Source: Haliotis cracherodii
Lineage: Eukaryota
NCBI RefSeq assembly: GCF_022045235.1
Contig: NW_027266330.1
Location: 4,154,001 to 4,218,000, forward strand
Direction: 5' to 3'
DNA: 64,000 bases
Positions 5,801-39,400 of the stretch are shown here, one piece after another. The position numbers and the translations under genes are program-made. Position 1 is the stretch's first letter, and each line of letters begins with the position of its first letter. The notes beneath the pieces were generated by a model. That model saw only the letters and a program-made list of their open reading frames with translations. It searched no databases and was not told where the DNA came from.

Positions 5801-8800
5801 TGACAGGTATATGTCAGGTAGGTGTCAGGTATACGACAGGTATATGAAAGGTATATGCCAGGTATATGTCAGGTAAATGACATGTATATGTCAGGTATAT
5901 GCCATGTATATGTTAGGTATATGTCAGGTAGGTGTCAGGTATATGACAAGTATATGACAGGTATATGTCAGGTATAGGACAGGTATATGACAGGTATATG
6001 AAATGTATATGTCAGGTTTATGACAGGTATAGGACAGGTATAGGTCAGGTATATGACAAGTATAGGACAGGTATATGACAGGTATAGGACAGGTATATGC
6101 CAGGTATATGTCAGGTATATGCCAGGTATATGCCAGGTATATGTCAGGTAAATGTCAGGTATATGTCAGGTATATGACAGGTATATGTCAGGTATATGAC
6201 AGGTATATGTCAGATATATGTCAGGTATATGACAGGTATATGTCAGGTATATGACAGGTATATGTCAGATATATGTCAGGTATATGACAGGTAGGTGTCC
6301 CAGTCTCACATGGCCCTGTACCGATGTTCCCCTGGTTTCAGACACACAGTTAACATCACCACCGTCAAGGACGAGGAGTACTCCGTCATGTCCAATCACT
6401 CCGATGACTTCCATCTCCTCCTGACGTCATTCATAGAAGGCCTGCAGATGCGCTCCAAGTACGCAATAGTCATCGACAACAAGCAAGGTACGTTCCTGGC
6501 TCATATATTCATAAACGACAAGCAAGGTACATACTTAGTTTACAAAGTCATCGACAACAAGCAAGGCACATACCTAGTTTATATAGTCATCGACAACAAG
6601 CAAGGCACATACCTAGTTTATAAAGTCATCGACAACAAGCAAGGCACATACCTAGTTTATATAGTCATCGACAACAAGCAAGGCACATACCTAGTTTATA
6701 TAGTCATCGACAACAAGCAAGGCACATACCTAGTTTATATAGTCATTGACAACAAGCAAGGCACATTCCTGGCTTATATAGTCATCGACAACAAGCAAGG
6801 CACATACCTAAAGTACTCACGGAAATGAAAAAAAATGTTTTTTCGACCTCAGATCTTAAATAAATGCAGTTAATATACAAAATATGTAAATATTCAAACA
6901 AACTAAATTAGTACTAATTGGGCCGTGGCACAAATACAGCGTGTCAAAAGTTTGTATGCCTTTTTACACGTAAAAGTGTGTAAAAATGTGAATAAAACAG
7001 ACTATTGTGGAACAGGGCATAACCAGGTGTAAGTAGATCAAGGTGACCTATGACACCTTGACGACAGGTGAGAACAGGTGCATAATGCCTATAGTCTGTT
7101 TCTGCTATGTCAATTTGGACTTAGTTTTATTTTTGAATGTTGAAAGTGCCGACAAAATACCTCCTGTAAAGTACATTTTGTATTGTTCACTGAGATCAAA
7201 CTAGCAAATCCAGACTAGTACTTTTCGAGTTGTTTTGTTATTTCGTATTTACAGCTACATTTGTACGTAACACTTTGTGTCGATTTTTAAATTGAGAAAA
7301 ACAGGGTTTTTTTCATTTCCGTGAGTACTTTAGTTTATATAGTTATCGACAAAAAGCAAGGTACATTCCTGGCTTATATAGTCATCGACAACAAGCAAGG
7401 TACATTCCTGGTTTATATAGTCATCGACAACAAGCAAGGTACATTCCTCGCTTATATAGTCATCGACAACAAGCAAGGTACATTCTTGGCTTATATAGTC
7501 ATCGACAACAAGCAAGGTACATTCCTGGCTTATATAGTCATCGACAACAAGCAAGGTACATTCTTGGCTTATATAGTCATCAACAACAAGCAAGGCATAT
7601 ACCTAGTTTATATAGTCAGCACTATCCCCTTTTTCTGGCTTGACTCTAAATCCGCGAAGACATGTCCATTCCTTTGATGTACTGAGCTCCAAAGCTCAAT
7701 AAAAGTAGGTACAAAGAGAGAGATATTGCTGTGTCCGGCAAATGTACCACCAAATCCCTGTCTCAACGATTAACCATAAGCCTCAATACAATCAAGGAAT
7801 GGCCTTCTTCAATTCTATTCATAGGAGGCATTTGAGACATATGGAATTAATACCATGGGGATTCTCAAAAATTCAACGGATTTGCTTGATGTTTCACAAT
7901 CTCAGAAAACCCCCGGTTCAATTCAGTCAAAACAACTGATTTTTAAGTTATTAAGAGAAAACTTCAAGTCTTGATCCATGGGGCTTTTGTTACAAACAAG
8001 GTGACCATAAATATAGACACGTGTCTACATGTCTGAAAATGAATGTAAATGCCAACTCCAAGTTTAATGAGAAAGCAATATGTGAAATATCGGACTTCCT
8101 CATTGATAAAGTATATGTAAAAGTTTGGTTTAAGACATTTGGGCAGGACGTAGGATCCAAATAGCCCCTTCTTGCGGAACTGTTTCTTTATGCATATGAA
8201 TTGGAATTTCTGTCTGTTCGCATTGACAAAGTCAAAACAAGGTAATTTGGCCAATTAGTTGAACATAAGCTTTAGGTATATCGATGATCTAATATCGTTC
8301 AATAACAATCCAATAGCCAATTCCCTTCCACTGATTTACCCACCTGAACAAGAAATATAACTAAAGAGACCGGTGAGACCGCCTCATGTGTTTCATATTT
8401 AGGTCCAGGTAAAAATAGTTAGACTGACAAAACACTCTCCACAAGACTGGATGACGAGAGGGGGGACTTCAACTTTCCAAAAGTCAACTTTCCCTTTATG
8501 TCGAACAATATTCCTGCAGCTTCAACCCTTGGTGTCCACATTTCTCAACTTCTGAGATACAATCGAGGATGCTCTTTCCACCAAGATTTCAAAGATTGTC
8601 ACATGCTGAGCGTTTTGATCAGAAGTTGTCTGATCAACGTTACATCATTCAAGGCCTCAGTAAAGCTTTCAATTTTTTTATGGTAGACATGTGGAGGACA
8701 TTTCCAAATTTGCCGCATCAGTGACACAATAATGTCCCTATTTTGATTTACCTTTAGGGAACACCTGGTGTCATCACTATTTCGTATGAATATAGAAAGC

Positions 8801-11800
8801 GTTTTGTATCTTTTATTATTATTATTTATTAACAGTATGATATCGTTAAATCTGGCCGATAGATCAAATAGAATATAGGAAGACAGCATACACGTTGTTT
8901 CTTCTTGTAGATCTGAAGAAGGGAGACCTGATCACGCTGGACAAGGCAGTCAAGGAATACAACAAGCTGGACCCCTTCCGTGGCGTGTGTCAGAGGACAG
9001 GCAAACCGTGTGACGTACCGCGGGACCTCGTCTATATCCTCAACACCGTGGATGAGCCTTCCTCAGAGGTTCTGGTAAGCTGATCTGGCACTCCGCACAC
9101 ATTTCTCTAGCACACAATCGCACACACTAACAAACACACACGTATGTATATACGCAAACACACATTAATGCGTACACATTTACACACTTATACANNNNNN
9201 NNNNNNNNNNNNNNNNNNNNNNNNNNNNNNNNNNNNNNNNNNNNNNNNNNNNNNNNNNNNNNNNNNNNNNNNNNNNNNNNNNNNNNNNNNNNNNNNNNNN
9301 NNNNNNNNNNNNNNNNNNNNNNNNNNNNCGCACACGTGCATACNNNNNNNNNNNNNNNNNNNNNNNNNNNNNNNNNNNNNNNNNNNNNNNNNNNNNNNNN
9401 NNNNNNNNNNNNNNNNNNNNNNNNNNNNNNNNNNNNNNNNNNNNNNNNNNNNNNNNNNNNNNNNNNNNNNNNNNCGCACGCATACACACATTCACACACA
9501 TGCATACACACATTCACACGATCACACACGCATACACACACATTCACACACAAACACATACACTGGCACACACACGGCTTGTGTCACTTCAGTGCCTCTC
9601 CCACATCAAGTTGACACGCTGAGCACTGAATGGTCAGACTTTGTCCACTGGATAAAGACGTGGACGCAATACAGACCATGGTATCAATTACTATTTTCAC
9701 ACAAAAATTAAAATAAAGTAATTTTGTAAGTAAGTAACTATTGATGACGATGCTTAAACCTGTTACCATCAAACAGGGCTGCGACTTCAGGGGGCTGTGA
9801 TTCCCTAGTCACGTCAGTGTGTCTGTTTCAGACAATGTTTACAGTGCAATTAGAGAGAGACAGTCAGGTGTTCAGGAACCAGGACGATGGCCGGCCTCAT
9901 ACACTCCAGAAATACTCAAGATATCATTTCAGGTGAGAACAAAGAACTTTATGCATGCAGCCCGTCCTCACCTCTTGTTAACAGCTACCAGAAACATTCC
10001 GGGAGTCTGTCTGTGTATTAAATGAAGCTCTATGCTTGTCTGTTGCTGCAGGCGACAGTTAACGACCAGCAATGCCAAATATCTCATTAAAAAATACATA
10101 CTGTATCTTATTATTCAAAATGTCATACTGCTCTATGCAAGGCATTTTCGCATACCAATAAGATATATATTAACCATTACAACTTTTCGTTTTGGATCTT
10201 AAGCCATGCAAAATATTATGTTCGCATTTACATGTTCTCAGCCGATTCTACTCATACTCTTTGGGGCGGTGGGGTAGTCTGGTTGTTAAAGACCCGGGTT
10301 CGATTCCCCACATGGGTACAATGTGAGAAGCCTATTTCTATTTTCCCCGCCGTGATATTGCTGGATTATTGCTAAAAGCGCCCTAAAACCATACTCACTC
10401 ACTCACTCACTCTGCTAATTCTCTGACGTCATTGTTAAGACAAAGCATCTTTTCCAGACAACCCAACGAGAATGCCGTGACGAAGATTTTCAACAAGGCT
10501 TCTATAAAACGCGGGAAGGGCAAGAGTGACCTCATCTGGCAGTTCAGCAAGGACCCCATCAAGAAGCCCCTCCTGAGAAAGTCCTTGAACCGAGATGACA
10601 CCCGCCTCATGGCTTGTCGAACATTCACTGATATCCTTCCCCGTGCTTCTTGCAGCCGCATAGCTGTCTCCACAGCTGCCACGTGTCTGGTCAGCGTGGG
10701 TAGTTGTGTTACCAATAGGGGACCCGTGAAGACCCGGGTTAGAATAGACCTTCAGCAACCCATTCTTGCCGTAAAAGGCGACCATGTTTGTCGTAAGAGG
10801 ATATCAGCATCGGGTGGTCAGGCTCGCTGACTTGGTTGATGCATGTCATCGTATTCCAATTGCGTTGATCGATGCTCATGATGTCAATCACTGGTTGTCT
10901 GGTTCAGACTCGATTATTTACAGACCGCCGTCATAGAGCTGGAATATTGCTGAGTGCGGGGTTAAACAACAAACAGACAAAACAAACCAATAGGGCTGGT
11001 GTGTACAACTACTGGTTATTAATATTGTGTTCGCTTGTCACGGTTCAGACCCCGGTTCGGCCCCGTAATGTAATGTTTCATCCCTGGTGTTCCAAGACTT
11101 ACTGGAATGTTGCTAAACCGGCGTAAACCATCACTCACACATCCCCTCCTGCTATCAGTTCCCACTCAGTGTTAACGAAAGATGCATCGTGAAATATAAT
11201 AGTGAGCCCGACCGGAACAAATTGTCCTCGTCTAGGTTTCATGACGAGGATAAGATTTGTTCAATAACTCGAGACAGACAGGAACAGGAAACATTGAAAT
11301 GAAACTATTTTTTTAATACTTCTGATGTCACGAATTGATTTGAATGGTCACGTAAGTGTATCAGTTGACGATAGCAATAATTAGGATTTACCGAATACGA
11401 ATGAGGTGATACATGTATTCAACGAATGCTCACTTGAACGACTCATATTGTACTTAACCAGATGAGTCGTCGCTATGACATGGACTATATTTCATACACA
11501 CTGGACACTTTTTTATAACAGTGGGTTCCTCGACTAACAGAGATATATGTCTGCCTCCGTCTGCCTTTGTCCTAGTTGTACCTTGGAACATATCCCCTGT
11601 ACAATATCGATACACCGACATATACCTGCTGGAATGTATCCACGTGGTTCGTTACACACGTGGGGAGGAAGATGTATCGGCAGCCTGGCTTCCGGGCAGG
11701 GGTCATCGGGTGAATGTGACCTCTGGGTAGTTATCGCCTGATTCGGTTTATTGTTGTAAAACATATCTCATCGTGACATGAGTCCGTCGTTAATCACGTC

Positions 11801-14800
11801 CCACGCATACCACCGACTGTCTGTTTTATAGCTGCGTAAATCATATGTTACTATTTGTCTTCCCCAAAATAATCAAATCAGAATTAACCCATATCTATCT
11901 TCTCATACCTCATGGCCGCGTGTGCATTCTGCCGTGATAAAATAACTGCCGTGATAAGCCTGTTGTTGGATACTGATAGTTTCCTATATTCCCTTATACT
12001 TGATTTAGATATGGAATATCTCTACAACAAATGTATGATAGTTATATTAATAAACATAGTTGTTATTTTATTGATATTTAGCGCCAGTTGAATAAGTTAT
12101 TACCTGTTTCTACAATCATTTGCCGATTAAAAGGATAATTAGTTTTATTGTTGACCTTGACCTAACCACCAGTCCAGCAGTTCATGGGGGACGCCCACCT
12201 GAAGGACAATGTGACGGACATTGAGCTGGCCAATCGCTGGATCGTCGAGCCGGCTAGCAGAAGTGTGAGTTTAACGGAGGGAACAGCAATGTTAGCACTT
12301 GCCTCTGTATTACGCCTTGTGACCATATTACCCCTTGTGACCATATTACCCTTGTGATCATATTACCCTTGTGACCGTATTAACCCTTGTGACCATATTA
12401 CCCCTTGTGACCATATTATCCCTTGTGACCATATTACCCCTGTGACCAAATTACCCCTTGTGACCATATTACCCTTGTGACCATATTACCCTTTGTGACC
12501 ATGTTACCCCTTGTGACCATATTACTAGCTGTAACTATAGCACCAGAATAATGTAACCAAATAACCATATTATAAATTGAGACCACTTGTGCCCAAGCTA
12601 CTAAGTGTGACATATCCACTCCTTGTGACAATATTACCAGATGTTACCAAATTACCAGTTGCGACAATATTACCAGATGTTACCAAATTACCAATTGTGA
12701 CAATATTACCTGATATTACCAAATTTCCAATTGTGACAATATTACCAATTATGGCCATATTACTATTTGTGAGAAACATTCCAGTTGTGACCAACTTACT
12801 ACTTTTGACACAATTCGCGCTCCTCAGTAGCATACATAATTCATTCCGGAATGACACGTGGCCACACATGGATTGGGTAATAGCTTAGTTATGCCCCTTG
12901 CATGGCGAATTAATTTCCTAGAGTGAGATATATTAAATTACAGTGAAACGGTTTTGTGGATTCTTAATGAAGTTTCTGTTTTTTTTCAGAGATATTTACG
13001 AGATGAAGTTTTCTGTCAAGTTATCAAGCAACTGACCAACAACTCGAACAAGTGAGAATCCTAACAGTTTGATAGAAAATTACATCCTCCTTGTTATCTA
13101 CAAACTTGCATACACGCAGAACGACAAAGTTCTTAAACCCATAGCGTGTCATAAAGTTAAGTAATTTATACATTGTTAACAGATTTTGCCAGAAGAGAAA
13201 TTTATTAGGAATTAAATCAATTACATTTATTTGTATTGACGTCCCATGTTTGTCCTCATGTCGACCTTGACATTGACCCGCCACGGTGCTGTGTCTGCAG
13301 GTCAAGTGAGGAACGTGGGTGGTTGTTGTTGCTGATGCTGGCTACGACGGCGATCCCGGGGGAGGGGCTGTATGATGAGGCGCAGAAGTTTGTGCGGTCA
13401 AGCCCTCTCCCCATCGCCAAGCTGTGTGGTGAGAGGCTGGAGAGAGCTAAGACGTGAGTAGCGTTCACCGGGTCCATGGTCTCCACACATGCACTCGTGG
13501 GTACTTTAGTCTTTGTGTGTATTTTGATTGAGAACTCGTTATGGATAGAACAGTTGAAACCTATGTCAAAAGCCGGTTTTCTAAACAATAGAGCGTTTTG
13601 TTTGTTTGTGTACTGTTTGACGCCGCAATCAGCAGTATTACAGTTACTTGACTGCGACATGTAAATAATGGAATCTTGGCCAGATAATCCAGTGATTAAT
13701 TTTGTGAGCAATATGATCCACGCCGACGGGTCGCGAGGACACGCAATCCAGCAAGTCACAGAGTGTACGCTCATTGATTTACTACATGATGTGTACATGC
13801 ATGTAAACGTTAGAAAGTAACAAAACTTAAATGATTCGAAACTGTGTAAATATGTTTTATTGGACAATCATTGAAATATTTGTATTTAAGGAAGATAGAG
13901 CACCCATAATGAAAAAAATCTATAGTTAACGTAGATACTGACTAACCTAATACTGTGTAGACGCGGCTGTCGACTGTGGCCGCCCCACCCAGCTGAGCAC
14001 GACATGCTGTCCAGGAAGCTGCCCACTGTCCGAGTCAAGGTGTACATCCCAGACAACACCTGCCAGGTAAGCTTGACCTCTGGTCTTTTTGTCGTTTAAC
14101 AGTGCGTGAGTTACATTCAAGACAACTTTAAATAATATTCAAGTTATATCGTGGTACGTCAGCTTAATGTGTGGGGAAAGCCTGAAGTGATGCAGGACTC
14201 AGACGTTTACCACTTTGGTGAAACCCATGAGCACGGGTATGGTGCTGACAAACCTAGAAACAGAATCGGGGCGAACATAGGTGTCTGGCGTGCCAAACGG
14301 ACGCATCTCTGCACAGCGAATAGCGGCGTCTTAGATGACTGGGCCATCCGTGCCCGCACAACGAGTATGTGCTGTATGGTGCTGTCAAATCCAGAAACTG
14401 AATCAGAACGAACTGGATTCGAACCCGTGTATCGGTATCTGTTACACTGTCAGTCTGCAGTCGCTTTAGACATCTGGGCCCCCGGGCGCCCTTTACAAAT
14501 ACCACTCCTTGTGTACTGGAAGATGTCAGAACAGAACACGAAACACATCTGCGTTGCACATTCTCTATGACCCATCACATCATGTACACGTCAGTGTTCT
14601 TATGACCGTTAACCCATCCATTGTTCCGTCACGCTGATTAACGTCCACAGTTGTTTGACGTTGGTGTGGAACAAGATCGACCAAGTATCCTGGAAGTACT
14701 GGCTACCCATGTCCAAATGTTGGTCGAGGCCTTGCACCCCATCTATTCCACGTGGAACTGTCATGTTAGTTTCTGTATCAAGCGACACAAGTATACGACC

Positions 14801-17800
14801 CGAAACCTAATCATCGCATTATGACTGATTACTACACTAGATCTTAGTTCATGCGTTGTACAATCTCCCTCTGTGTATCGTGGAGTTATGTTGACGTGAG
14901 AGTCATCTACAGTACACATCTTAGTTATCCCCTATGTAATTACCACTGATGTAGTTCGACTTTATGTAGAAGTATGTAGAACGGCTATGATGTTGTTTTT
15001 TAAGACATTCGACGTGACGTCAGTGACGAGAATCATCGACATTAAGCGAGAGGTGTGCACGAGACTTGGCCTGAAGACGTGGGAAGAGTACAGCTTGTTC
15101 ATGAGCTTCCAGGACAGCGGTCAGTTTGTTATTTATAGTCAGTGTGTAAATGATGAACTTGTTGAAAACATAACAAATAGACAGCTATTTGAATATACAA
15201 AAGATGTGAGGATGGTGCACGTGACGCCATCTAGTGAGTCAGCATTCGTCCATGCAGTGGAAGGAAACATTGTGTCAGAACATCTCTGCACTGAATAATG
15301 ATGATCGTCCTTCAGATCTAAAAAGAAAGTTATTAGTTATTGTCCAGATTGAAATTGAAATTATTCCTGCACAGTGACATGCTAGCTTAATGAATGATCC
15401 TTGTTCCACCTTCAGTACACTCCCTCCAAGCAAACGAGTACTACTTTGACGCCCTGTCGCATGCCGAGATGTACTGGGTGTCTCAGAAAGCCGCCATTCG
15501 GGCAAGACGTAAGTATAGTAACCGACCCGTATACAGGGTGTGTGTGTGAGTGTGAGCGGGGGGAGGGGCTGGGTTGAGTCCGGCGGTCGGTCGGACGGGC
15601 GGAGGAGTAATATGGTAGGTAGTATAGGTAGTAATCTCTCAGCTGAAGCCGTAGATACTGTAGTATAGGTAATCATCTTGTGTATATATGTGGATGGAAT
15701 ATTCTTGTCTAATATTTTAATAGCAATTTACGCTGTAAGGTGAATGATGTTTTCATCATAGATACTCATGATCATTGGAACTCTGGTTCATGTGTGTCCC
15801 ACTGTGTAGCTGTAATGTCCGTCCACGTGTTCCAGTGTCCGGTCCGCTGACCCCGGTCCTGGTGATGCTGAAGAAGGTGTGGGTCAATATCAAGCCTGGA
15901 CACGACTCGGTGGCCGATGTGTCCTTCCACTTCCCGCAGGTATGTGTGCTTCCACTTCCCGCAGCTATGTGTCCTTCCACTTCCCGCAGCTATGTGTCCT
16001 TCCACTTCCCCCAGCTATGTGTCCTTCCACTTCCCGCAGATATGTGTCCTTCCACTTCCCGCAGGTATGTGTCCTTCCACTTCCCGCAGCTATGTGTCCT
16101 TCCACTTCCCGCAGGTATGTGTGCTTCCACTTCCCGCAGGCATATGGGCTGTCGGGTAGCCTAGTGGTTAAAGCATTCGCTAGTCACGCCGAAGACACGG
16201 GTTTGATTCCAAGACGGGTACAGTATGTGAAGCCGATTTCTGGTGTCCCCTGCCGTGATATTGATGGGATATTACTAAAAGCGGCGTAAAACCATACTCA
16301 CACACTCGCAGGTGTGTCTTATTGTCGTAGGTTGGTGCTATTCCACATACCGCGGGTCCAGGGAACACATATGTTGGCACATAGTTAATACTCCTTTAAT
16401 GAAAAGAAGTATGTAAGAAGAATCCAGTTATATCTTGAAAATTCAAACAGGGACAACAGTGAAACCGAGCTCTTCCTGTTGCAGGAGCTGCCCAACTTCA
16501 TCCGTGGATATCACCAGACTACAGATGACGTGACCGCCAGACTCGCATCCCTCGCGTACAGGGCCAAGTACGGCAACGAACCCAAGCCACTGAAGGAAAC
16601 ATTCAGGTACTAGTGACCATAAGCCATGTCCGTTCAGTGACACTTACTGTAATAATCTTTCTGAAGACGATCTGCAGATATATCGTTTTACAGTTGGCCC
16701 CCTTGGTCTCTATTGTTTGTTGGTTGTTTGATGCCACAATCATCAATATTCCAGTTATATTGCTATACGTCGGTATGTAAATAATCGAGTCTGGACCTGA
16801 CGATCCAGTGATTGACATGAGCATCGATCCACGCAATTGGGATACGATGGCATGCATCAACCAAGTCAGTGAGCCTGACCACCCGGTCCCGTTAGTCGCC
16901 TCTTACAACAAGCATAGTCGCCTTTTACGGCAAGCATGGGTTGCTGAAGACGGATCTTCCCCGGATCTCTACAGGCCTCTGTTTGATTTCTACTTAACAA
17001 TACTTATTGTAAATGTGTGAAGTTCATCAAATACGTCTGGAATACCACTATTTACCAGGTGTATATTCTGATGATTTCAATATTTTCAGTGAGGTCAGCA
17101 AGAGCATTGCCCCGAAGAAGCTGTTGCAGACGCAGTCCTCGGAATACTGGTCCAAGGTAGGCTAGACAGTTTACAACAATACTGGTCCAAGGTAGGCTAG
17201 ACACAGTTCACACGATACTGGTCCAAGGTAGGCTATACGCAGTTTACACAATACTGGTCCAAGGCAGGCTAGACACAGTTCACACAATACTGGTCCAAGG
17301 TAGGCTAGACACAGTTCACACGATACTGGTCAAAGGTAAAGTAGACACAGTTCACACGATACTGGTCTAAGGTTAACTAGTCACAGTTCACACAATACTG
17401 GTCCAAGGTAAACTAGACACAGTTCACACAATGCTGGTCTAAGGTTAACTAGACACAGTTCACACAATACTGGTCTAAGGTTTACTAGACACAGTTCACA
17501 CAATACTGATCTAAGGTTAACTAGTCAAAGTTAACACAATACTGGTCCAAGGTAGGCTAGACACAGTTAACACGATACTGGTCCAAGATAGGATAGACAG
17601 TTTTCAACAATACTGGTCCAAGGTAGGCTAGACAGTTTACAACAATACTGGTCCAAGGTAGGCTAGACAGTTTACAACAATACTGGTCCAAGGTAGGCTA
17701 GACAGTTTACAACAATACTGGTCCAAGGTAGGCTAGACAGTTTTCAACAATACTGCTCCAAGGTAGGACAGACAGTTTACAACAATACTGGTCCAAGGTA

Positions 17801-20800
17801 GGCTAGACAGTTTACAACAATACTGGTCCAAGGTAGGCTAGACAGTTTACAACAATACTGGTCCAAGGTAGGCTAGACACTTTACAACAATACTGGTCCA
17901 AGGTAGGCTAGACAGTTTACAACAATACTGGTCCAAGGTAGGCTAGACAGTTTACAACAATACTGGTCCAAGGTAGGCTAGACAGTTTACAACAATACTG
18001 GTCCAAGGTAGGCTAGACAGTTTACAACAATATTGGTCCAAGGTAGCCCATCTTACTGACGCACAATCATTGGTTTCGCAATGTCGGTCATCCGTGTTAT
18101 TCATTTCATTATTATGTTTGTTATCAACATAGCCATCGGAGGCAAGTTGGCGAGCAATTCGCTGTGCATGTAACATTACCTAGACAGGAACCTTTCCTTG
18201 ATGCCAATCCTCTTTTCTCCCTGATGATGTTCTTAGCTTTGTTTGCACCATAGTCATGCTGTTGGCTTTCACCACATGGTGTCAAGTCTTGCGTCCACTC
18301 ACTCACTCACCCTAATGATCAGTACCATGTTGGCAGACAATCACTCAGTACTACGACGAGGGTAAGGATCTGAGCCAGGATCAAGCAAAGGCCTCCTTCC
18401 TCAAGGTCATTAGCCAGCTCACGACATATGGATCCATATTCTTTGAAGTCAAGGTAAGTGACCATTCAACATGGCTGTGACGCATTCAAGACACATTGCT
18501 CTAAGAGCTGTTGATTAATTACCAACCCTTTTCAAAACTCTGTTCAAAACTCTGCTATTACATACTAATCGAAAGACACAAGCACATAAGCAACTGCAGC
18601 ATATATGTCAAAGTAACCTTCGAGGTAAACAATATTGTCCACGAATGGCCATACACTATCCCCACTGAATATGAAAGCAACCATTTCACAATCACGATGG
18701 CTGTTAACAATAAATACTATGTTTGTCACAAGAGAAGTCCCAGGATCTTTGTGGTATGCTTCACGTCATCATGTTCTTGTAACATGACATGATATAATGG
18801 TGGGGGAAACATTGCTTCCAGCAACGAGCTCAAAAAGACCTTCCCAAGAACCTCCTGGTGGCGATCAATATGACAGGGCTGCACCTGATTGACTCCAACA
18901 CAAGGGTGAGTTCACCACTTACTGAACAGCTTGGAGCCAAAAGGGGCTAAAATGCACTTTGGCCTTTTTGGCATATTATTGCACAAATAACATGTATGAA
19001 TATTTGTAGAAAAAATATGTCATGTTTTCATTGATAAGTTTTTGAAATATAGCCACTTAAAATTCTGTAAAAAGGGCCAAAGTCACTTAAAGTTTGCTAG
19101 ATTTTGTCCCTTTTAGCTCTCATTTCCGTGTGGGTTGTGTAAGAGATTTTGAAAGTTTGGAAACATTATTATTATGTTTCATCTATTTCAACAAAGTTGA
19201 CATTAGTTTAAATTATTTAAAAGAACTTTGCTAGTATGTGTTTGTACTTTCAGTAGTTGTTTTATCAATCTCACCTGTTAGATCCCATGCAAATGCTTGA
19301 GGGTAAAAAGGGCCAAGATACAGACATTGGCCCTTTCCAACCTCACACAAATTCAAACGTAAGCTTATTTCTTTTCTTAAATGTTTTTAGCAACATTTAT
19401 ATGTCTGTTGTCGGAATTCGTTAAAGTTCAGGAATTTATCGGTGAATAAAAATTGTTCATTAGCATGCATATGGTTATGGCTTGCATCAGTTTTCTCAAA
19501 ACGGACTCCACGTGACAATGCCTTTGGGGCTGAAGTCTGTCGACTGTGTACTGCTCTGTCTTCACGCTGGGTGTGGGTGTGACCGGGGATTGTCTTGCAA
19601 TGTTCCGACTTCATCACGGCTGACTGGCGCTAGCTGAATCTAGGCCAGACAAACCAGTGATTGATAGCATGAACAACGGTCACCTTATCTCCACCAGACA
19701 CGCGCTGCCTCGGTATATCCACTGGCTGCCTTGTGCTGTGGTGACATTCTACTTCATATCTATTGTACGCAATCCAATGGTAATGAGGTGAGATGAGGTG
19801 AAACTGGTTTTTATATAACGTCCCGTTCAGGTCACATGATACTGTCTCAGAGCCGACCGTCATTGTGTGATCTCCTTAATGTCGAGCGCCAGGCAGGGAA
19901 ACAACAAATGTCATAAAGATGAGAAATTATGGGTGTCAGCTTCTTTATTATGAGGAACACAACGTTTGGAGTATATGCTTACTCCTTCATCAGGTGAATA
20001 AATGCTATGAGGCAGAGAACTGAACATTTATATGTACCTGTAGGAACAACAAAAGTAATAAGATAACGAAGGTGGAAACTTAACAATGAAAGCCAACAGT
20101 TAATTGTCGCTGATAGGTGATCAAAAATGAACCAATGCCATCGCTAACGTCTGTTGGTATGACGCGGCCGGGGATCTTACCCCGACATTCTGCTGTCTGG
20201 ACTCTATCCACTAGACCACGGAGGCGGTCCACACACTGTGGGGACACACGTTTAATACACAATGTATCCATCACATGCTGTCGGTCGTTACAGTGTACAA
20301 TCCCTTAACATTTAACACTCATTAAAGTTTTCGACATCTACTGTCATATGTGCATGGTGTGTTCTCTCCATTGCAGAGAATGTTGAGGACACTGGAGTTC
20401 TCACAGATCCCCAACTGGGCCTTCGACGAAGACTCCATCACGCTGATGGTGATAGATGGGACGAACACCATCAAGATGCTGCTGGAAACAAGCGTGGTAA
20501 CTATGGGAACATATCTGACATACGCAGACTCCCCAGGGAGCTGATAAAGAAACTGAGTGAACGATGATCCAAAGACTTGGGTATTAACAATATGGAGCAT
20601 TCTTTTGGAGAATGGACTCTGATGCATTATACCCAGACTTAGTGTTATACTGGGGGGCACGGGTGGCCAAGTCGTCTAAGGCGCCGCGATTCGCTGTGCA
20701 GAGTTGCGTCCCTTGGACATGCCAGAAACCTATGATTGTGGGTTCGAATACCGGTTCGTCCCGATTATGTTTCTAGGTTTGTCAGCGCCATACCCGTGAT

Positions 20801-21757
20801 TGTGGGTTTCACCGAAGTGGTAAACGTCTGAGACCTGCATCACTTCGGCCTTTCCTCCCACATTAAGCTGACGATATAACTGGAATACTGTTAAAAACGA
20901 CGTTAAACCCAACTCACTCACTATACACATACTGTCAAAACCTGTTATTCTGAACCCTGTTAATTTGGACACCCGAGTTCTCGGACAGTGCTGGGAAAGC
21001 GGACACGTATACAAGGGGACATGTTCTGAACTTATGTTTCGTTTATCACGACATTTCGTATTTTGAATGATTTCATTTTGAACGCTTCCGTTATTTACAC
21101 TGTCACAATCAATAAAATACATGTTGTCAACAGCCTTTCTGATATGACTGTTTGTTTAGCATTCCTGAAGTTGGTCAGTAACAAGATAAACATGCAACTT
21201 TATGGATAACAACTTCTGAATCATTGTATATACCGACGTTTCGATGTAGATTATTACACCTTCATCAAGCTGGAGTGTCTAGTTGTTGTCCATAAATAAT
21301 TACGTTTTCTTATTTCCTCATTCAACCTGTGAAGATCCGGGTTAGAATTGATCTTCAGCATGTCATGTATGTCGTTAGAGGCAACTAACGGGATCGGGTG
21401 GTCAGGCTCGCTGCCTTAATTGATGAATGTCATCATATCCCAATTGTTTGGATCGAAATGTCAATCACTGGATTGTCTGGTCCAGCTTCGTTTATTTACA
21501 GGCCGCCATCATATAGCTGGAATAGTGCTGAGTACAGCGTTAAACAACAAACCAATATTTCTTCATTCTAATATATATGGTTTTATTAATTTATAAAGTG
21601 TTGACTTGAAGTGAGACTTGGCTATTCTACGACGTCCATGTTTCAGGGGCACAACATGGACGACATCCTCATGGCCTATATCAGCTGGGTGATGAACACA
21701 CAGATGCGGAAGAAGCACGGGTTTGCAGGTTCCCCAGCTGGTGAAAGTACCTGTTAG
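227..21757 (+). CDS. MYO7A: Unconventional myosin VII-like gene, 3' part (MyTH4-FERM-SH3-MyTH4-FERM tail), 23 exons; motor domain lies upstream of the window
   Basis: Manually spliced exons join in frame (3132 nt, ending TAG at 21757). MyTH4 motifs [21 protein letters not shown] and [21 protein letters not shown]; FERM motifs [15 protein letters not shown] and [10 protein letters not shown]; SH3 [10 protein letters not shown]; C-terminal [13 protein letters not shown]. Divergent, so it may be a paralogue rather than the strict orthologue. Confidence 0.93.
734..851 (+). CDS. myosin VII-like exon (MyTH4-1)
   Basis: ttcag|[39 protein letters not shown]|gt. Confidence 0.92.
1152..1325 (-). mobile_element. 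SINE-like family C, partial copy
   Basis: Homology to 16714-16900. Confidence 0.7.
1640..1768 (+). CDS. myosin VII-like exon (MyTH4-1 end)
   Basis: gtag|[26 protein letters not shown]|gtcggt. Confidence 0.9.
1821..2000 (+). mobile_element. SINE family A, 5'-truncated copy
   Basis: Matches 20652-20922; (ACTC)n tail; 12-bp TSD tcaaccggtgta at 1809-1820 and 2001-2012. Confidence 0.85.
2230..2403 (+). CDS. myosin VII-like exon (FERM1 F1)
   Basis: gtcag|[28 protein letters not shown]|gtacgt. Confidence 0.92.
2830..2893. repeat. (GCAC)n microsatellite; similar arrays at 29600-29680, 36343-36406 and 55620-55656
   Basis: Direct reading. Confidence 0.9.
3099..3326 (+). CDS. myosin VII-like exon (FERM1)
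   Basis: atcag|[29 protein letters not shown]|gt. Confidence 0.92.
4010..4189. mobile_element. possible TTAA-flanked mini DNA transposon (Kolobok/piggyBac-like)
   Basis: ttaaaggg..ccctttaa termini; the TIR is short. Confidence 0.35.
4225..4655 (+). CDS. myosin VII-like exon (FERM1 F2/F3)
   Basis: cacag|[28 protein letters not shown]|gtgtgt. Confidence 0.9.
4920..5545. repeat. Degenerate C-rich tandem repeat (ccctcctcacacacccatccccaacc-like)
   Basis: Produces the spurious 241-aa Pro/His/Thr ORF. Confidence 0.8.
5544..6298. repeat. 11-bp satellite caggtatatg(a/t), about 68 copies
   Basis: Direct reading. Confidence 0.92.
6342..6487 (+). CDS. myosin VII-like exon (FERM1 end / SH3 start)
   Basis: ttcag|[32 protein letters not shown]|gtacgt; an alternative in-frame donor exists after 6526. 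Confidence 0.85.
6466..7617 (+). repeat. 39-bp minisatellite containing a myosin donor site, about 16 copies, split by a MITE
   Basis: Unit atagtcatcgacaacaagcaag|g(t/c)acatacctagtttat. Confidence 0.92.
6811..7330. mobile_element. MITE (Tc1/mariner-type, TA TSD) inserted into the 39-bp minisatellite
   Basis: TIR aagtactcacggaaatgaaaaaaa / tttttttcatttccgtgagtactt; TA duplicated at 6809-6810 and 7331-7332, splitting the unit catacc-TA-gtttat. Confidence 0.88.
7620..8760 (+). pseudogene. Decayed Penelope-like element reverse transcriptase
   Basis: Frameshifted remnants [81 protein letters not shown]. Confidence 0.8.
8911..9074 (+). CDS. myosin VII-like exon (SH3)
   Basis: ttgtag|[26 protein letters not shown]|gtaagc. 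Confidence 0.9.
9832..9932 (+). CDS. myosin VII-like exon (linker)
   Basis: ttcag|[19 protein letters not shown]|gtgaga. Confidence 0.88.
10262..10410 (+). mobile_element. SINE family B copy
   Basis: GGGTTCGATTCCCCACATGGGTACAATGTG.. plus (ACTC)n tail. Confidence 0.75.
10458..10630 (+). CDS. myosin VII-like exon (MyTH4-2 start), ends at an AT-AC donor
   Basis: tccag|[26 protein letters not shown]|atatcctt. Confidence 0.88.
10631..12169 (+). other. U12-type (minor spliceosome) AT-AC intron
   Basis: Donor ATATCCTT, branch site CCTTGAC at 12155-12161, terminal AC at 12168-12169. Splicing restores ACRTFT-A-VQQFMGD in frame. Confidence 0.9.
10722..10990 (+). mobile_element. SINE-like family C (non-tRNA structured head, (CAAA)n tail), inside the U12 intron
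   Basis: About 260-bp dispersed repeat with several copies in the window. Confidence 0.8.
12170..12264 (+). CDS. myosin VII-like exon (MyTH4-2)
   Basis: ccac|[19 protein letters not shown]|gtgagt. Confidence 0.87.
12310..12800. repeat. 17-18-bp minisatellite ccttgtgaccatattacc, decaying toward 3'
   Basis: Direct reading. Confidence 0.85.
12990..13051 (+). CDS. myosin VII-like exon (MyTH4-2)
   Basis: ttcag|[20 protein letters not shown]|gtgaga. Confidence 0.92.
13301..13453 (+). CDS. myosin VII-like exon (MyTH4-2)
   Basis: tgcag|[17 protein letters not shown]|gtgagt. Confidence 0.92.
13961..14066 (+). CDS. myosin VII-like exon (MyTH4-2 / FERM2)
   Basis: tgtag|[22 protein letters not shown]|gtaagc. 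Confidence 0.9.
14100..14356 (-). mobile_element. SINE family A, degenerate copy
   Basis: Homology to 59106-59386. Confidence 0.7.
15005..15119 (+). CDS. myosin VII-like exon (FERM2 F1)
   Basis: ttaag|[27 protein letters not shown]|gtcagt. Confidence 0.9.
15416..15508 (+). CDS. myosin VII-like exon (FERM2)
   Basis: ttcag|[21 protein letters not shown]|gtaagt. Confidence 0.87.
15836..15939 (+). CDS. myosin VII-like exon (FERM2)
   Basis: tccag|[34 protein letters not shown]|gtatgt. Confidence 0.88.
15917..16141 (+). repeat. 25-bp minisatellite containing a myosin donor site, 9 copies
   Basis: Unit gtgtccttccacttcccgcag|gtat. Confidence 0.93.
16147..16306 (+). mobile_element. SINE family B (tRNA-Asp-like head, about 160 bp)
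   Basis: GTAGCCTAGTGGTTAAAGC..GTCACGCCGAAGAC..GGTTTGATTCC; same 3' tail as family A; other copies at 10262-10410(+), 37527-37650(+) and 31234-31347(-). Confidence 0.75.
16485..16606 (+). CDS. myosin VII-like exon (FERM2 F2)
   Basis: tgcag|[23 protein letters not shown]|gt. Confidence 0.9.
16714..16976 (-). mobile_element. SINE-like family C copy
   Basis: Reverse complement of 59859-60125. Confidence 0.8.
17090..17156 (+). CDS. myosin VII-like exon (FERM2 F2)
   Basis: ttcag|[22 protein letters not shown]|gtaggc. Confidence 0.88.
17143..18046 (+). repeat. 35/36-bp minisatellite containing a myosin donor site, about 25 copies
   Basis: Unit aatactggtccaag|gtaggctagacagtttacaac. Confidence 0.93.
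18337..18453 (+). CDS. myosin VII-like exon (FERM2)
   Basis: ggcag|[29 protein letters not shown]|gtaagt. Confidence 0.92.
18822..18905 (+). CDS. myosin VII-like exon (FERM2 F3)
   Basis: tccag|[28 protein letters not shown]|gtgagt. Confidence 0.92.
19915..20129 (-). mobile_element. Hammerhead-bearing Penelope-type insertion nested in a family D SINE
   Basis: CTGATGAaGGAGTA-agcata-TACTCC-AAACgtt; imperfect 12-bp TSD aacaaatgtcat/aaccaatgccat. Confidence 0.55.
20377..20496 (+). CDS. myosin VII-like exon (FERM2 F3)
   Basis: tgcag|[21 protein letters not shown]|gtaact. Confidence 0.92.
20652..20922 (+). mobile_element. SINE family A, full length (tRNA-Leu-like head, V-domain-like body)
   Basis: A box TGGCCAAGTCGTCTAAGGCG, B box GGTTCGAATACC, body GTGGGTTT..TTTCCTCCCACA, (ACTC)n tail. 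Confidence 0.8.
21185..21272 (-). mobile_element. Hammerhead-bearing Penelope-type unit
   Basis: TTGATGAaGGTGTA-ataatc-TACATC-GAAAC-gtcg-GTA followed by agaagttgttatccataaa, as at 28.4 kb. Confidence 0.55.
21325..21553 (+). mobile_element. SINE-like family C copy (single hairpin module)
   Basis: Homology to 59859-60125. Confidence 0.8.
21647..21757 (+). CDS. myosin VII-like terminal coding exon
   Basis: ttcag|[21 protein letters not shown]. Confidence 0.92.
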   Translation, partial: GHNMDDILMAYISWVMNTQMRKKHGFAGSPAGESTC

Positions 21758-23249: not shown

Positions 23250-23705
23250 CAATACCTAGGATAATATAGGTACGACCTATGATATAGTTAGCACCTAGGA
23301 TATATGACCTAGGATATAACAAGGACCTAAGGTATAGCAAGGACCTTGGATATGACTAGGACCTATCATGAAGTTTGGACCTTGTATATAGCGTATATGT
23401 ATATGTTATAACCAGGACTTGGGATATAACTAGGACCTAGGATATAGCTAGGATCTTGGATATAACGAGGACCTTGGATATAACTAGGACCTTGAACATA
23501 ACTAGGACCGAGGATATAATTAGGACCTTGGATATAAATAGGACCTTGGATAGAACAAGGACCTGGGATATAACTAGGACCTGGGATAGAACTTGGACCT
23601 TGGATATAACTAGGACCTGGGATAGAACTAGAACCTTGGATATAGCTAGGACCTAGGATATAACTAGGACCTGTGATATAACTAGGACCTGGCATATAAT
23701 TAGGC
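23250..23705. repeat. 18-bp minisatellite ggatataactaggacct(t/a/g)
   Basis: Produces the spurious GPSYI ORF. Confidence 0.88.
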
Positions 23706-25353: not shown

Positions 25354-25963
25354 AGAATGCAGATCATAATACCCTGAGGCCACTAACATTCTTTGTATAG
25401 GGTAAATCAAGCTAGCTAAATTTCGTTTAATTCATTTGAAGTAGACATTAATATAATAAGTTTAACAGTGATTTATAGACGTACAATATCTTAAGCAAGT
25501 ACATTTGGCGGAAGTCTTCAAACAAATTACAGATTAGCAAAGAAATGATATTCCGTCTCTTACAAACCTTGCATAGTCTCTGTTCTCTTGGTACGTGTAC
25601 CTATTATCTGTCTCAATACATAACTCGTGTGAACTGTAGAGAAACTGTGCAATAGCATACCTGGATTCACTGAGTGTTATTTAATGTGTAGAAGGTTTCA
25701 CAGAGCATTGATTCTCGAACACTGAAAATTAAAGCGTTTTGGTACTGACACAATTATTCATATCGATACAGAAGCCATCCTCCTTTAGTCATACGATATG
25801 ATGAAATAGTACTTCAGAAACAAAGTAGTAGAGAAGTAGATGGCCGTATCTGAAACTATCATTAGTCGTTAGACCCCCGCATTCACCTGATTGTGTAACT
25901 TGACACACGCTGTCCAGTTGGTGATTGAGTGCACGTCTTATCAGGTGGAAGAAATGACTGATA

Positions 25964-26096
25964 ATTCCATACCTTTTTGTTAAACGTCAAGGTTTATTTG
26001 ATTTCTTTAGCGACGTCGGAGATGTTGATTATTTTATGTCTAACCTGAGTGTCGGTCTCGGCATGAATAATCTCGATTTATAAAAAGGTATGGAGT
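25964..26096. mobile_element. mini-MITE, about 130 bp
   Basis: Inverted termini tccataccttttt / aaaaaggtatgga. Confidence 0.5.
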
Positions 26097-26229
26097 ATTG
26101 GATGTAATATAATAGTATGCATGGTATAAGGTTCATGAATAAATTTACCCATTTAGTTTCTTTGAATTTCTTTATGAATACCGCAAACACATAACACATA
26201 GAATTCCAGTTTCAGTGTAGGAATGGCCC

Positions 26230-26700
26230 CTGTTTGGGATAATCGATAGCTGGTTTCTGGTCTTCTCCCTCGCATGGGCGTGGTCTAGGTTTCGCAACTT
26301 CTTCTTGGGTGGCGTCAAACTGACTGGATTGTGATCGCTGTACTATCCTGCTCAACTTGCAGTATCTCAATGAATATGTGCATGCCACCCCTCGAGATGA
26401 TTTGGTGGCGTCGACCCACTGCTCAGGGATATATTTTGTGCTTCATGACAAAGTCTTTTGAGTAAATGATGGTCGGCTACCCTCCAATGAATGGACGTTC
26501 GACGTCCGGTCTTAATCATGAACTTGTATTCGGAACAAAAAACATGTGTTTAAGAATAGAGAATAAACTGTACACCAACCTGCGCATCTGCAAAGTCGGT
26601 ATGTTGACTTTACTTTACCTTTGGTGTCTTCCATGCAGACACTTGTACTTACATCAGGTTTGTAGAATGTTCCACTTACAAAGTAACATTTTGCAATGAA
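26230..26700 (-). pseudogene. Possible decayed MULE (Mutator-like) transposase fragment
   Basis: Minus-strand frameshifted RR(T)N-HLEGWH followed by FIEILQVEQ. Confidence 0.4.
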
Positions 26701-28311
26701 TATAGATGAGTTCTGACATACAGCATCTTACTGCCACTAAACAATTTCAGATTAGCTTCCACGTATCAAATTCCAAGGTTCTACCGGTGTATCTACAGAA
26801 CATGTAGAAGTTGCAATCATTTCCCAGGAACCGGATGAATATATTATGTGGATTTCGCTCAAGGCTGAAGGCTGTAGTACATATTAGACATGGCGGCGTT
26901 ATTGCACAGATGTTGTAATCATTGTTCTGTCTATCACGGATCAGCCGGGAAATGCATATTCGACAGGGTGCAAAGAACGTTGGTGCAAGAATTGAATAAT
27001 GGACGTGTAATATCCATGTTTTATATTATGGCATAATCGTTTACTTGATGCATTAATTCATTCATCAACTTCATCGTTAACTATAATGATCACGGGGAAG
27101 GACGACGTCGTTTAACGTCCTTCATTCATTGATGCACAACTTGAAAAGAAGAATGAATGACGTCAGGGAATGACGTTGCGTTACAGTCGGGTCGTTTCTT
27201 GAAGTCTTCCTCCTGGTGTTTCACAACCAAATACACATGGTAATTGATGACTGGTTGGTGACCCAGATATTTACTGAAATGTACCTTTCCGTCGATTTAT
27301 GTTTTAACGAACATGTAACTTCACATGTAACAATGTAACTCATGATCACTTTATTCTGATAATTGCATGTAACAAGGATTTCTACAACAGGTCATATTGG
27401 TTTTAACATTATTATGCAACATTTTAATACAATGTATGTGAACAATATTTTTGTCATGAAACATTATGAAACAAGGTTGTTGTTTGTTGTTTATTATGCT
27501 TATTATAACAACTGTATAACAACATGATCCTACACGCACTGATTAAATAACCAGACAGTTGGCCTGTGATGGTATTTCCACATTCACCGAAGGGACTGGT
27601 CCCTGCCTAATGAAGGAAACCTTTGAATACACCTTGAACCTCAGGAACCAACAATGTAAATTATTGATGCGGGGGCTGATACGGAATAGGTTTATATCGG
27701 CGCTTTAAGACATCTATGCCATATTTCTTGAATCAATTATTCTTTAAAACAAATTCCATCCCGAATATCCAACAGTCGGTCTTTGAACGCAAGTGTTTCC
27801 CTTCTGAATATTGTAATATACACGAATTTAGATTATGTATACTCTGGTATACAGTTTATTCTGTGTCGCCATGAATGTGAATGTGTCTGTACCCATGTTC
27901 GATCAGGGGTTAGATCATACGTCGCAATTAGCGTATGGAAAAATGGGAAATTGAAAAAAAGATTAGGAAATCTTTAACTACCAGGATGACCTACATTACT
28001 AATGCTCTTCCTCGAGACAAAACAAGCGTTCTTTAACTACGTAACTACTTGAAAGGGTTGCCAGGTTACCCCATCGCGTTGCCCCGCTACATAGTAACAG
28101 CCACCTACCCATACCAAGTCTGGAAGCTGTCTACAATGGCCCTAGTATAGTGCTACACACCTGTCTGGCAACAGGAAGTATTCCGAGATTCACCAAGCAG
28201 ACACCTATGTCATAATAACATCAGCTAACCATCTCAGGATTAAATTTCAATATTCGGTTGATAAATAGCATAAATGGTCCTTGAGGATTGAGAGACTACA
28301 TATGAGATGAA

Positions 28312-28656
28312 GTCTTTGATGGTCATTTAGAAGTTGGGAGAACATGAATACATGCAACTTTTTATGGATAGCAACTTCTTATATTCTTTGTATGACGTTT
28401 CAGAGCTACTTCTTACTCCTTCATCAGGTGAATGCATATTTTGGATGAAGGAGCAAGAGGTAGCCCTGAAACGTCGTACAAAACACATAAGAAGTTACTA
28501 TCCATAAAAAGGTGTCATGTATTCATGTTCTCACAACTTCTAAATGCCCATCAAACACTGCATTCACCTGATGAAGGAGCAAGGGGTAGCTCTGAAACGT
28601 CGTACAAAGAACAAATGAAGTAACTGTAGCTATCCATACAAAAGTGTCATGTATAC
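28312..28656. mobile_element. Penelope-type pseudo-LTR cluster (one inverted plus two tandem ~110-bp units) with hammerhead-like cores
   Basis: Unit tgcattcacCTGATGAaggagc..gctctGAAACgtcGTA..aagaagttgctatccataaaa on - at 28312-28436 and on + at 28440-28556 and 28557-28656. Confidence 0.65.
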
Positions 28657-29616
28657 ATAAGAGATTGATATTCTAGAAATGCAATATCTGCATTAGCAGT
28701 GATTTCAGCCACACCACACAGGAGAGGATGTTACTATTTACTGGTGTTCACAGTGTATAATCAACAAGCTATCACAGATCAATCTTTGATGTGCCATCAT
28801 ATGGCGTGTTGGACACAGGCTGAGTACCAAGGGTATATGAGGACACTGCTACTGCTGATGACAGCATGTCAGGACGTATGTCGATCGGATGGACAATATG
28901 GCGGACGGACACGACGCAGTATAGGCTGCTACACTACATCATAATACACGCATCTGTTCCCATCAAGGCGAATGGTAAACGGGTAGTGGTCATGGCCTAT
29001 GGCCCTTACAGCACCTAGGAAAAGCATACATGTTCCGTTTGATCGCTTATTGTCACTCTCAATGAGGAAATAGTACATCGGTTGGCTATATACTGACACA
29101 GAACGAACACATTGGCTATAAAATGAACTTCTAGCGTAAATAGACTCATACTATCTACAGTATTCAGCCACGTGATATTTATATCATGTGAATATATTGA
29201 GAGACAATGACGCAAATAGCTTTATCAATATGATTGCCATGGAAGCCAGATTGTACTAAGAATGGAGACGATTTTCAAACCAATGGATACTCGTCAATAT
29301 TCAGTGGACGATATCTTCATACAGATCCAGGGTATCTATTATGTCGGGCTGATTATCACAGGTACACACATAGAAGACTTATTGCCTACGGGAGGCTTTC
29401 TCAATACGATGAATATGCAGAACCAACTATGTAATATAACTATTTAAAATAATTCGATTTTTGTCAAAAATGAGGGGGACACGTGCACATCCATAATGCA
29501 AGCCCCCTCCCTTACATATCTATAAATCAAAAATGTACATTTGCGACACATTATTGGCCCCGTAATCATCTTCTGTACCACACAGAACATCACACAAACA
29601 TGCACACACACACACA

Positions 29617-29676
<60 letters not shown>

Positions 29677-29789
29677 CACACCTCACTACTAGTAGCTTAA
29701 CAGATACATGTGATCATACAGTTACACAGAGGGACAACCGACAGGACTCACAATGTACCAATGAAGCACTACACCTGCATTACGGAAAG

Positions 29790-36404: not shown

Positions 36405-39400
36405 CGATGCAGCTCAGTGGAGGAAACACATCTGACTCTCTCAACCACCCTACTTATTGCATATATGAAAATATTTTACCCCTGTAAAGATCCAGACAAG
36501 ACCTACCTTCATGTTTCGCTGTAAAGGATATGGTTGACTCTTCCTGTTTCTGATTCACGTGAACTGGTATCTTCCCCACGGGTCCGAGGATCTCACACGT
36601 CATACGTCCTGTACAGAGGTACCCGGTAGAATATACAAGTTATACTCTCTTTACAGGGGTACCCGGTAGAATAAACACGTTATACTCTCTTTACAGGGGT
36701 ACCCGGTAGCATAAACACGTTATACTCTCTTTACAGGGGTACCAGGTAGAATAAACACGTTATACTCTCTTTACAGGGGTACCCGGTAGGATAAACACGT
36801 TAAACTCTCTTTACAGGGGTACCCGGTAGAATAAACACGTTATACTCTCTTTACAGGGGTACCCGGTAGGATAAACACGTTAAACTCTCTTTACAGAGGT
36901 ACCCGGCAGGATAAACACGTTAAACTCTCTTTAGAGAGGTACCCGGTAGGATAAACACGTTAAACTCTCTTTACAGGGATACCTGGCAGGATAAGCACAT
37001 GTGCTCAGCTACTGAAACGTTTAATTCACTTTATTTTGACAAAACAAAAACACCATCGATGAATAGCTATTTACAATACAATTAAGGAGAAATGAAAAAA
37101 GGCATTCAGCAAGAAGGCATTGTTTAAAGATAACAAGTATACAACTTAACACTGCTCCAGCATAATCAGTGTCAAAGTTCATGACCCTGACCATCCTTAA
37201 CCCAAGAGACACTGCATACATATTAGGTAACTCATGCCAGTTCATTTTATCTATCACGCAAGAACATATTGTGCTTGAATAAAGATAACGGGTGGCAATT
37301 AAACAGATTTTACCTGGTCCTGCATTACTTGTGTCGAAGTCCAAGGTCGTGACCCTGTTGAATTCAAGGGCAATACGGTCCTGTTCGTCCTTGCGGTCCT
37401 CAAGGTCATCCAGCAAGGTCACGCCAGAGCGGTCAGTGAATCCAGGAAAGAACGGGCTACCTTGAAACAGATCCATTCGCGTTCGCAGGTTACCTTGCTG
37501 TATATTGTTCATTGTACAAGAAGTAGTGGGGTAGCCTAGAGTTTAAAGCGTTCCCTCGTCACGCCGAAGGCCCGGTTCGATTCCACAAATGGGTACAATG
37601 TGTGAAGCCCATTTCTGGTGCCTCCCGTCGTGGTATTGCTGGAGTATTGCTTTATCACTTTAACAGATTAAAGGCAGGACACACGACGCAGATAACACTC
37701 GACCATGCCGTTATCGGTACTTTCTGATTTGTGGTTTGTGTTGAAGAAAGCCGAATGGGACACAGTGTCAACCAACAAGCGCTGCAGAAGTTCGCCGAGA
37801 CCTTGACGAGATTAGGGTGACCCACATACCTCAGGATAAGATCAACGTTCAGATCTCCCATTAATCTTACGACTAAAACCTCTTGATATTATATAATGTT
37901 AACAACACATAGCAATACACAGAGATGCTTGTAGGAGCATGTGTATTGTACTCATTTCACGACATGAGTATCATAATTCTTGTATTTACCGAGCGAGGTT
38001 TTTTACGTTATTTTCATTTATGTCTTAATCGTTTTCAGCTCCCCTTAAGAGAAGAAATCACGAACGCCGTCTTAAGGGCATTCACACGGTACAACTAGTT
38101 GTATCCAATTTATTGCATGCAACATATTGCGTCGTCTGAACAGGCAAGTCTGGCCAATGTTTGACGAAGGAAGGTTTGCTATACGACATATGACCTGCTT
38201 TATTTTGTCGCGACATGTTGTACACACGCAGCCAATCAAAACGCGTATTAAAATTACGTGATATTTACACGTCAATATGGAAACAAAAATGGCGACTCCG
38301 ATTCACGGTGATAGGTCCTGCTTTCGGTATCCTAGGTATCACCACTCCAAGAAAGGACGTACAACGTAGCTACGTAAAATAACACTGTAACAAATTATGT
38401 ATTTTGATGGTCTAATTCTCCAGCTAGGTTTAACCTTTCATAGTGTCATCTGAAACGGCAGGCTGTGATTAGATAAGGTCCTTTACGTTTTCAAAACTTA
38501 AAAAAATCGAATGAAATCCTCAACTACGTCGTTTCTAGTAATGTCGCCCTGACAAATACACTAAACATTACACTAATATTTGAACAAGTGCACATACGAT
38601 TTTTATTTACTCGGTAATTCCATAACGGTACAATTTGAAGTTCCTTGTTGAGAATGTAGCGAAGTGCAAGCGTCAGTGACGTCTTTTCCTACAGGCAACT
38701 ATTCATTTGAAAGTTAAAGAGTATGTCAGCAATTTTACGTCAGTAGTTGAATGACATTTTATCACGTGCCGTGTAATGCCGTAAACCACGTGACGACGCT
38801 TACCGTTGACGTGTCTGTCGCCCCACATGACGTCAATCCTGTACGACCCTGCAAGGCGGGGGATGTAGCTGTACTCGGTGCCCTCCGAGGACAGGTTGTG
38901 CCGCTGATAGTCGATCTTAGTCCCGTTCTTAGCTGAAACAGAGGGACAAGACAAGATTACACAACTGACGGTGGACTACGGCTGTCATCACGACCGTTGC
39001 TCTAAAGGGATGAGGATGCTGGATGTCAGATGAAATGGGGTTTAACGTCACATCCAAGATTATTGCACTTATTTGACGACGTGCATGCACGTGTGTGTGT
39101 GTGTGTGTGGCTGCTTGTACTAGTCCTGACTGATGCCGATTTTATGGTGCTAGCCCACTAAGATACCATGCTGCAGTTTAACATGAATACCCCACTCAGA
39201 CACAGTATACTGACTCCGAGCCGAGCAGTCCTTGTTTTGTCCCCTTAATGCCGAGCGCCAGACAGGGTAACAACAAGTACCATCTTTTAACGTCTTTCGG
39301 TATGACGCGGCCGGAAATCGAATCCCGGCCGAATAGAACTTCAGTGGTGGAACAATATTATAAACCATGGAGCTTGAGTAAGTTTCAATTTAAGTTTTAG

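Follow-up and report, generated by a model that had tools for sequence, protein, structure and literature searches.

How does a gene go on using the right splice site when that site has been copied many times over into the adjoining intron, and do such copies arise at exon edges more often than chance would place them there? Both questions are raised by a stretch of 64,000 nucleotides from the abalone Haliotis cracherodii (assembly GCF_022045235.1, contig NW_027266330.1, positions 4,154,001 to 4,218,000), hereafter the window, in which a myosin-tail gene on the plus strand and a filamin-like gene on the minus strand carry five minisatellites, denoted arrays A to E. The five arrays are stacked copies of the host genes' own exon/intron boundaries, and each straddles the predicted working junction. 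They are mollusc cases of a known class of repeat, that of the amphioxus mirages and of a variable number tandem repeat (VNTR) in human F7. We consider it likely that they are mirage-type by-products of a high minisatellite birth rate in introns that were at first short, with the working copy set by its position.

Tandem repeats were called with Tandem Repeats Finder (TRF) on the 64-kb window, and the resulting 62 rows were reduced to 17 arrays with a period of at least 10 and at least three copies; a first-pass annotation of the same sequence had counted about 14 minisatellites. The five arrays that it had described as each containing a splice site of the host gene were all found by TRF:

6466-6810, plus strand: array A, proximal part; 39 bp x 8.8, unit of 22 exon nt + 17 intron nt (TRF)
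7335-7618, plus strand: array A, distal part; the 39-bp unit of array A x 7.3, beyond an inserted element (TRF)
15917-16139, plus strand: array B; 25 bp x 8.9, unit of 23 exon nt + GT (TRF)
17143-18046, plus strand: array C; 35 bp x 25.5, unit of 14 exon nt + 21 intron nt (TRF)
33331-34991, minus strand: array D; 31 bp x 53, 7 exon nt per unit (TRF)
36595-36998, minus strand: array E; 40 bp x 10, 14 exon nt per unit (TRF)

The arrays hold 9-53 copies with 89-94% matches. In the TRF register, every unit combines a splice site with exon bases (22, 23, 14, 7 and 14 in A to E); exon bases had previously been credited to four units, and all five include them (7-23 nt). Array D makes up 1654 of the 1842 nt of its own intron (~90%), and collapsing the 17 arrays, along with the element inserted in array A, removes ~12.6 kb (20%) of the window.

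To place the myosin exons, the exon at 4201-4671 was searched against protein representatives and the longer matches were aligned back to the window by tblastn; the exons of both genes were treated singly, one by one. The homologues mapped 21 exons of a MyTH4-FERM-SH3-MyTH4-FERM myosin tail on the plus strand, with a stop codon at 21755-21757 and with splice sites and phases consistent across all mapped exons. On the minus strand, Pfam matches delineated a filamin-like gene in which exons of calponin-homology (CH) domains are followed by filamin repeats, and phase-1 junctions link its last 13 mapped exons (41681 to 30982). The exons on which the arrays sit are the following, with a bar at the splice site:

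6342-6487, plus strand: myosin-tail exon 7 (FERM end, SH3 start); donor AAG|GTACGT after 6487, from tblastn of homologues, Pfam FERM_C1_MyoVII and a phase match with exon 8 at 8911
15836-15939, plus strand: myosin-tail exon 15, with the conserved end ...FHFPQ; donor CAG|GTATGT after 15939, from homologues
17090-17156, plus strand: myosin-tail exon 17 (67 nt, FERM central domain); donor AAG|GTAGGC after 17156, from Pfam FERM_M and homologues
33233-33337, minus strand: filamin-like exon D (105 nt, phase 1-1); acceptor TTGCAG| upstream of 33337, from phase pattern and profile continuity
36507-36608, minus strand: filamin-like exon E (102 nt, phase 1-1); acceptor TGTACAG| upstream of 36608, from phase pattern and profile continuity

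These junctions (donors after 6487, 15939 and 17156; acceptors at 33337 and 36608) had been named correctly in the first-pass annotation, as judged by homologues, phase and profile continuity. By tblastn, six homologues stop matching at 15939 and pick up again in exon 16 without loss of a residue. Exon 17 fills the gap that exons 16 and 18 leave between Pfam FERM_M positions 49 and 76 (positions 50-75 missing); homologues align to ...DWSK, with exon 18 directly after, and from donors 15939 and 17156 to the next exon 0 or 1 residue is missing. Exons D and E are short, and Pfam and PDB sequence searches with these exons alone gave nothing useful; on a filamin profile derived from the repeats of this genome itself, the two exons start at node 17-18, just behind the preceding exon with its end at node 15. 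Where the units contain exon sequence, it codes for residues conserved in distant homologues (FHFPQ in exon 15, the W of ..DWSK in exon 17), and the exons are thus older than the arrays.

The contiguous DNA was then read from each decoy site in the phase set by the neighbouring exon. For arrays B, C, D and E, an open, in-phase exon results from the exon-side copy only, and we infer from frame that this copy is the one spliced. It had been claimed that the functional copy always lies at the exon edge and that each array grows only into the intron. The exon-side copy is indeed compatible with an intact protein, and the arrays do lie on the intron side, but the "only" is partly true by definition, since whatever lies beyond the used site is intron. 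Array A is less simple: use of the strong donor in its second copy, at 6526, would keep the frame and lengthen the protein by 13 residues, while donor 6487 fits by phase and leaves the SH3 RT loop 7-11 residues shorter than in homologues.

Preservation of the decoys differs from array to array. Proximal array A keeps GT in one of eight decoys (6526), the other seven being GC; beyond the inserted element, six of seven copies keep it, as AAG|GTACAT. Two of the eight decoys in array B have GT (16064 and 16114, both identical to the working donor) and the rest have CT, AT or GC. GT is kept in 23/25 decoys of array C, where 16 carry the 9-mer of the working donor. Among the acceptor arrays, AG is kept in all 52 decoys of array D, with the last 12 intron bases common to 29 of 53 sites, and in all nine decoys of array E, as TGTAAAG|A vs TGTACAG|G at the working site.

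The term mirage was coined for tandem repeats of amphioxus Adh3 whose units cross exon-intron boundaries (Canestro et al. 2002, doi 10.1093/nar/gkf386, as cited in PMC3087553). Mirages recur in amphioxus globin, TnC and PGBD5, at 5' and 3' boundaries both, often with AG/GT kept and with splicing undisturbed (PMC3087553, PMC3902484). The abalone arrays are alike in that the unit spans the boundary, boundaries of both kinds are hit, many units keep AG/GT and several arrays occur per gene; their units, at 25-40 bp, are within the 10-160 bp range of amphioxus mirages. They are unlike them in host, a mollusc rather than a cephalochordate, and in copy number, which here reaches 53. Normal splicing and length instability were shown for the amphioxus repeats, whereas the arrays described here are known from the sequence of a single assembly.

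The other known case is the 37-bp VNTR of human F7 intron 7, in which the first unit lies on the exon 7 boundary and the identical pseudo-donors that follow are functional but silent, because 5'-to-3' scanning takes the first (Borensztajn et al. 2006, PMC1557585). Arrays C and B share this arrangement: a first element spanning the boundary and a working donor, then identical pseudo-sites (16 9-mers in array C, two in array B). Array A does not qualify as F7-type, its proximal part having one weaker GT and seven GC, and for the two acceptor arrays, D and E, F7 offers no model. Silence and the scanning rule were shown by mutagenesis in F7, whereas for the abalone donors we infer them. A third relative, the Rogers model, explains intron gain by tandem duplication of an exon segment containing AGGT (discussed in PMC3087553). 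Here too tandem duplication has copied splice signals and exon sequence; unlike in that model, no new intron or exon has resulted, and the copies stand in an existing intron, unreadable in frame in four of the five arrays. In the literature searched we found no report of the junction-spanning type in molluscs; a polymorphic 27-bp intron minisatellite has been described in abalone, in a paper that makes no reference to junctions (PMC6905558). With the five arrays, the range of a little-known repeat type, previously lancelets and one human gene, comes to include molluscs. They are also clean natural experiments in splice-site choice, in genes that still need an intact protein: one donor precedes 16 identical donors in array C, and one acceptor follows 52 AG-bearing copies in array D.

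Whether the junctions themselves attract repeats is a separate matter. The first-pass annotation had argued for preferential nucleation at exon edges from the tiny share of 64 kb that junctions occupy, an argument that ignores that arrays make up most of their own introns. Repeats inflate the introns that hold them, and uncollapsed coordinates therefore make chance junction hits look far rarer than they are; tests of enrichment at junctions must collapse the arrays first, which is the main methodological point of this analysis. In a first null, arrays were collapsed to one unit and 17 seeds were placed uniformly in the collapsed non-exonic window; 0.9 junction-spanning arrays were expected vs 5 observed (P(>=5)=0.0016). 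In the strictest null, each intragenic seed was kept in its own collapsed intron. The host intron of array A is 1292 bp long when collapsed and those of the other four arrays are 188-345 bp, the probability that a random seed includes the junction is 0.06-0.28 per array, and 1.37 arrays were expected vs 5 (P(>=5)=0.005). All P values from the window are post hoc, since the window was chosen for the pattern.

A replicate sample was drawn from 190 kb around other filamin-repeat genes of this genome, picked by Pfam match regardless of repeats and containing 51 arrays and 65 profile-detected exons. Arrays close to exons were judged by eye, because junction prediction with a small position weight matrix had gone wrong on the one clear case. 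That case (L046:8310-9462; G000:C67:39598310-39599462, minus strand) is a 33 bp x 21 array of an acceptor and exon start. There is also a two-copy acceptor duplication at L046:9758-9822; two further arrays abut a junction and have 9-14 nt in common with it, and two more lie within 50 nt of one. The count of junction arrays was 2 (strict) to 4 (lenient), vs an expectation under random seeding of 1.1 (units <=60 bp) to 1.7 or 2.2, with 4.4 arrays expected within 50 nt of a junction; at the window's ratio, the sample would hold ~7, and its power is low. The junction-array type therefore recurs in the replicate at about the random rate. Compared with random seeding, there is a post hoc excess in the window and none in the 190 kb replicate, whose power is low, and preferential nucleation at junctions is unproven and weaker than it looks.

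As an observation on the clear case itself, which lies in another filamin-repeat gene, each unit of L046:8310-9462 holds GTTACAG| and the first ~26 nt of the exon beginning GGTCCCCCTACAC.

The history that best accommodates these results would run as follows. A segment of 25-40 bp that took in the splice junction of a conserved, pre-existing exon would have been duplicated in tandem and amplified to 9-53 copies by slippage or unequal exchange. The exon-attached copy would have stayed in use, whereupon all other copies count as intron. The arrays would most likely be by-products of a very high birth rate of minisatellites in originally short introns, not of a junction-specific process. At donors, by analogy with the VNTR in human F7 intron 7, 5'-to-3' scanning would take the first of the identical sites; at acceptors, the downstream donor may set the choice through exon definition. 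In all arrays but A, a transcript spliced at a decoy would be out of frame or run into a stop codon, and would presumably be lost. Several observations weigh against this account. Donor 6526 in array A, to judge from its sequence, could be used. The excess within the window is 3.7- to 5.6-fold (P=0.005-0.0016), and eight of ten intragenic arrays have an edge <=50 nt from a junction, vs 4.0 expected under the strictest null (P=0.005).

The latter two figures are also what speaks for the strongest competing explanation, that splice junctions are true hotspots of minisatellite birth in this genome, several-fold over random seeding. Such hotspots could stem from the sequence itself (GT-rich donors, pyrimidine tracts or short direct repeats, such as the ATGTGT that flanks donor 15939 on either side) or from a process coupled to transcription or splicing. 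Five junction arrays vs 0.9-1.4 expected in the window, and 7 vs ~2.6 when window and replicate are taken together, favor it, but the window was selected for the pattern and the unselected 190 kb, even with its low power, is without excess and well below the number a hotspot of that strength predicts. We regard hotspots as unlikely, at perhaps one chance in several. If they were real, the places of tandem-repeat birth would be shaped by splice signals or by transcription and splicing themselves, and the 17 near-identical donors of array C and the 53 acceptors of array D would lend themselves to studying how the spliceosome chooses among identical sites.

Far less probable is the proposal that selection maintains the banks of decoy sites and that these, as the first-pass annotation had suggested they could, tune splicing efficiency or nonsense-mediated decay via copy number. 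Sites nearly all intact in array C (23/25 GT) and array D (52/52 AG) would agree with it, but recent amplification and homogenisation explain those equally well, the decoys of A, B and E are mostly decayed or weaker, and decoys are silent in amphioxus and in human F7. With decoy sites decayed in some arrays and intact in others, the proposal is without support.

The element that interrupts array A resembles a miniature inverted-repeat transposable element (MITE):

6811-7333: MITE-like element, 523 bp, 36-nt inverted ends, TA on both sides; splits array A

Elsewhere in the genome, 40 full-length copies were scored, at 95-97% identity, alongside 1085 first-look candidates, and such identity across many copies marks the family as young and high-copy. 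That the arrays are assembly artefacts, or that exon ends were recruited from earlier repeats, is highly improbable and both were rejected: the first because copies differ among themselves in structured ways and array A, split by a high-copy MITE with its own inverted ends, must be older than that insertion, and the second because exon-end residues are conserved in distant homologues and exons D and E stand at the position expected from neighbouring filamin repeats.

By-products of frequent minisatellite birth remain, then, our preferred account of the five arrays. Three further arrays that had been reported to start near junctions lie 49, 44 and 21 nt from those at 6342, 12264 and 44934:

5545-6293, plus strand: 11-bp array (x68), unit GACAGGTATAT; ends 49 nt before the exon 7 acceptor (6342) and is not junction-derived
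12308-12809, plus strand: 18-bp array; starts 44 nt after the exon 11 donor (12264)
44955-47461, minus strand: 22-bp array (x112); ends 21 nt upstream of the acceptor of the CH-domain exon at 44934

Every 11-bp unit at 5545-6293 carries AG|GT on the gene strand, and intron 6 is ~80% tandem repeat. The 11-bp array reads ACAG|GTATAT and the units of array D read TTGCAG|GTGTGT; both resemble recursive splice sites, by sequence only.

The assembly of the myosin-tail gene is interrupted at one place:

9195-9328 and 9344-9474: two assembly gaps (N), inside myosin intron 8 (9075-9831)

Homologue P0003 crosses from exon 8 to exon 9 without loss (residues 427-483, then 481-516), and hence no coding exon is missing at the gaps; none of the five junction arrays touches them. 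Further along the same gene, the intron at 10631-12169 is likely of U12-type AT-AC: it starts ATATCCTT and ends ...CCTAACCAC, and exon phases fit on both sides. In the filamin-like gene, three predicted acceptors (35365, 37460 and 41922, minus strand) read AAG|, an unusual 3' splice-site trinucleotide that is forced by phase and frame. Finally, the end of a CH2-type calponin-homology domain is encoded twice on the minus strand, by separate exon sets at 49700-49871 and 44262-44934, which may represent either alternative exons or parts of two genes.

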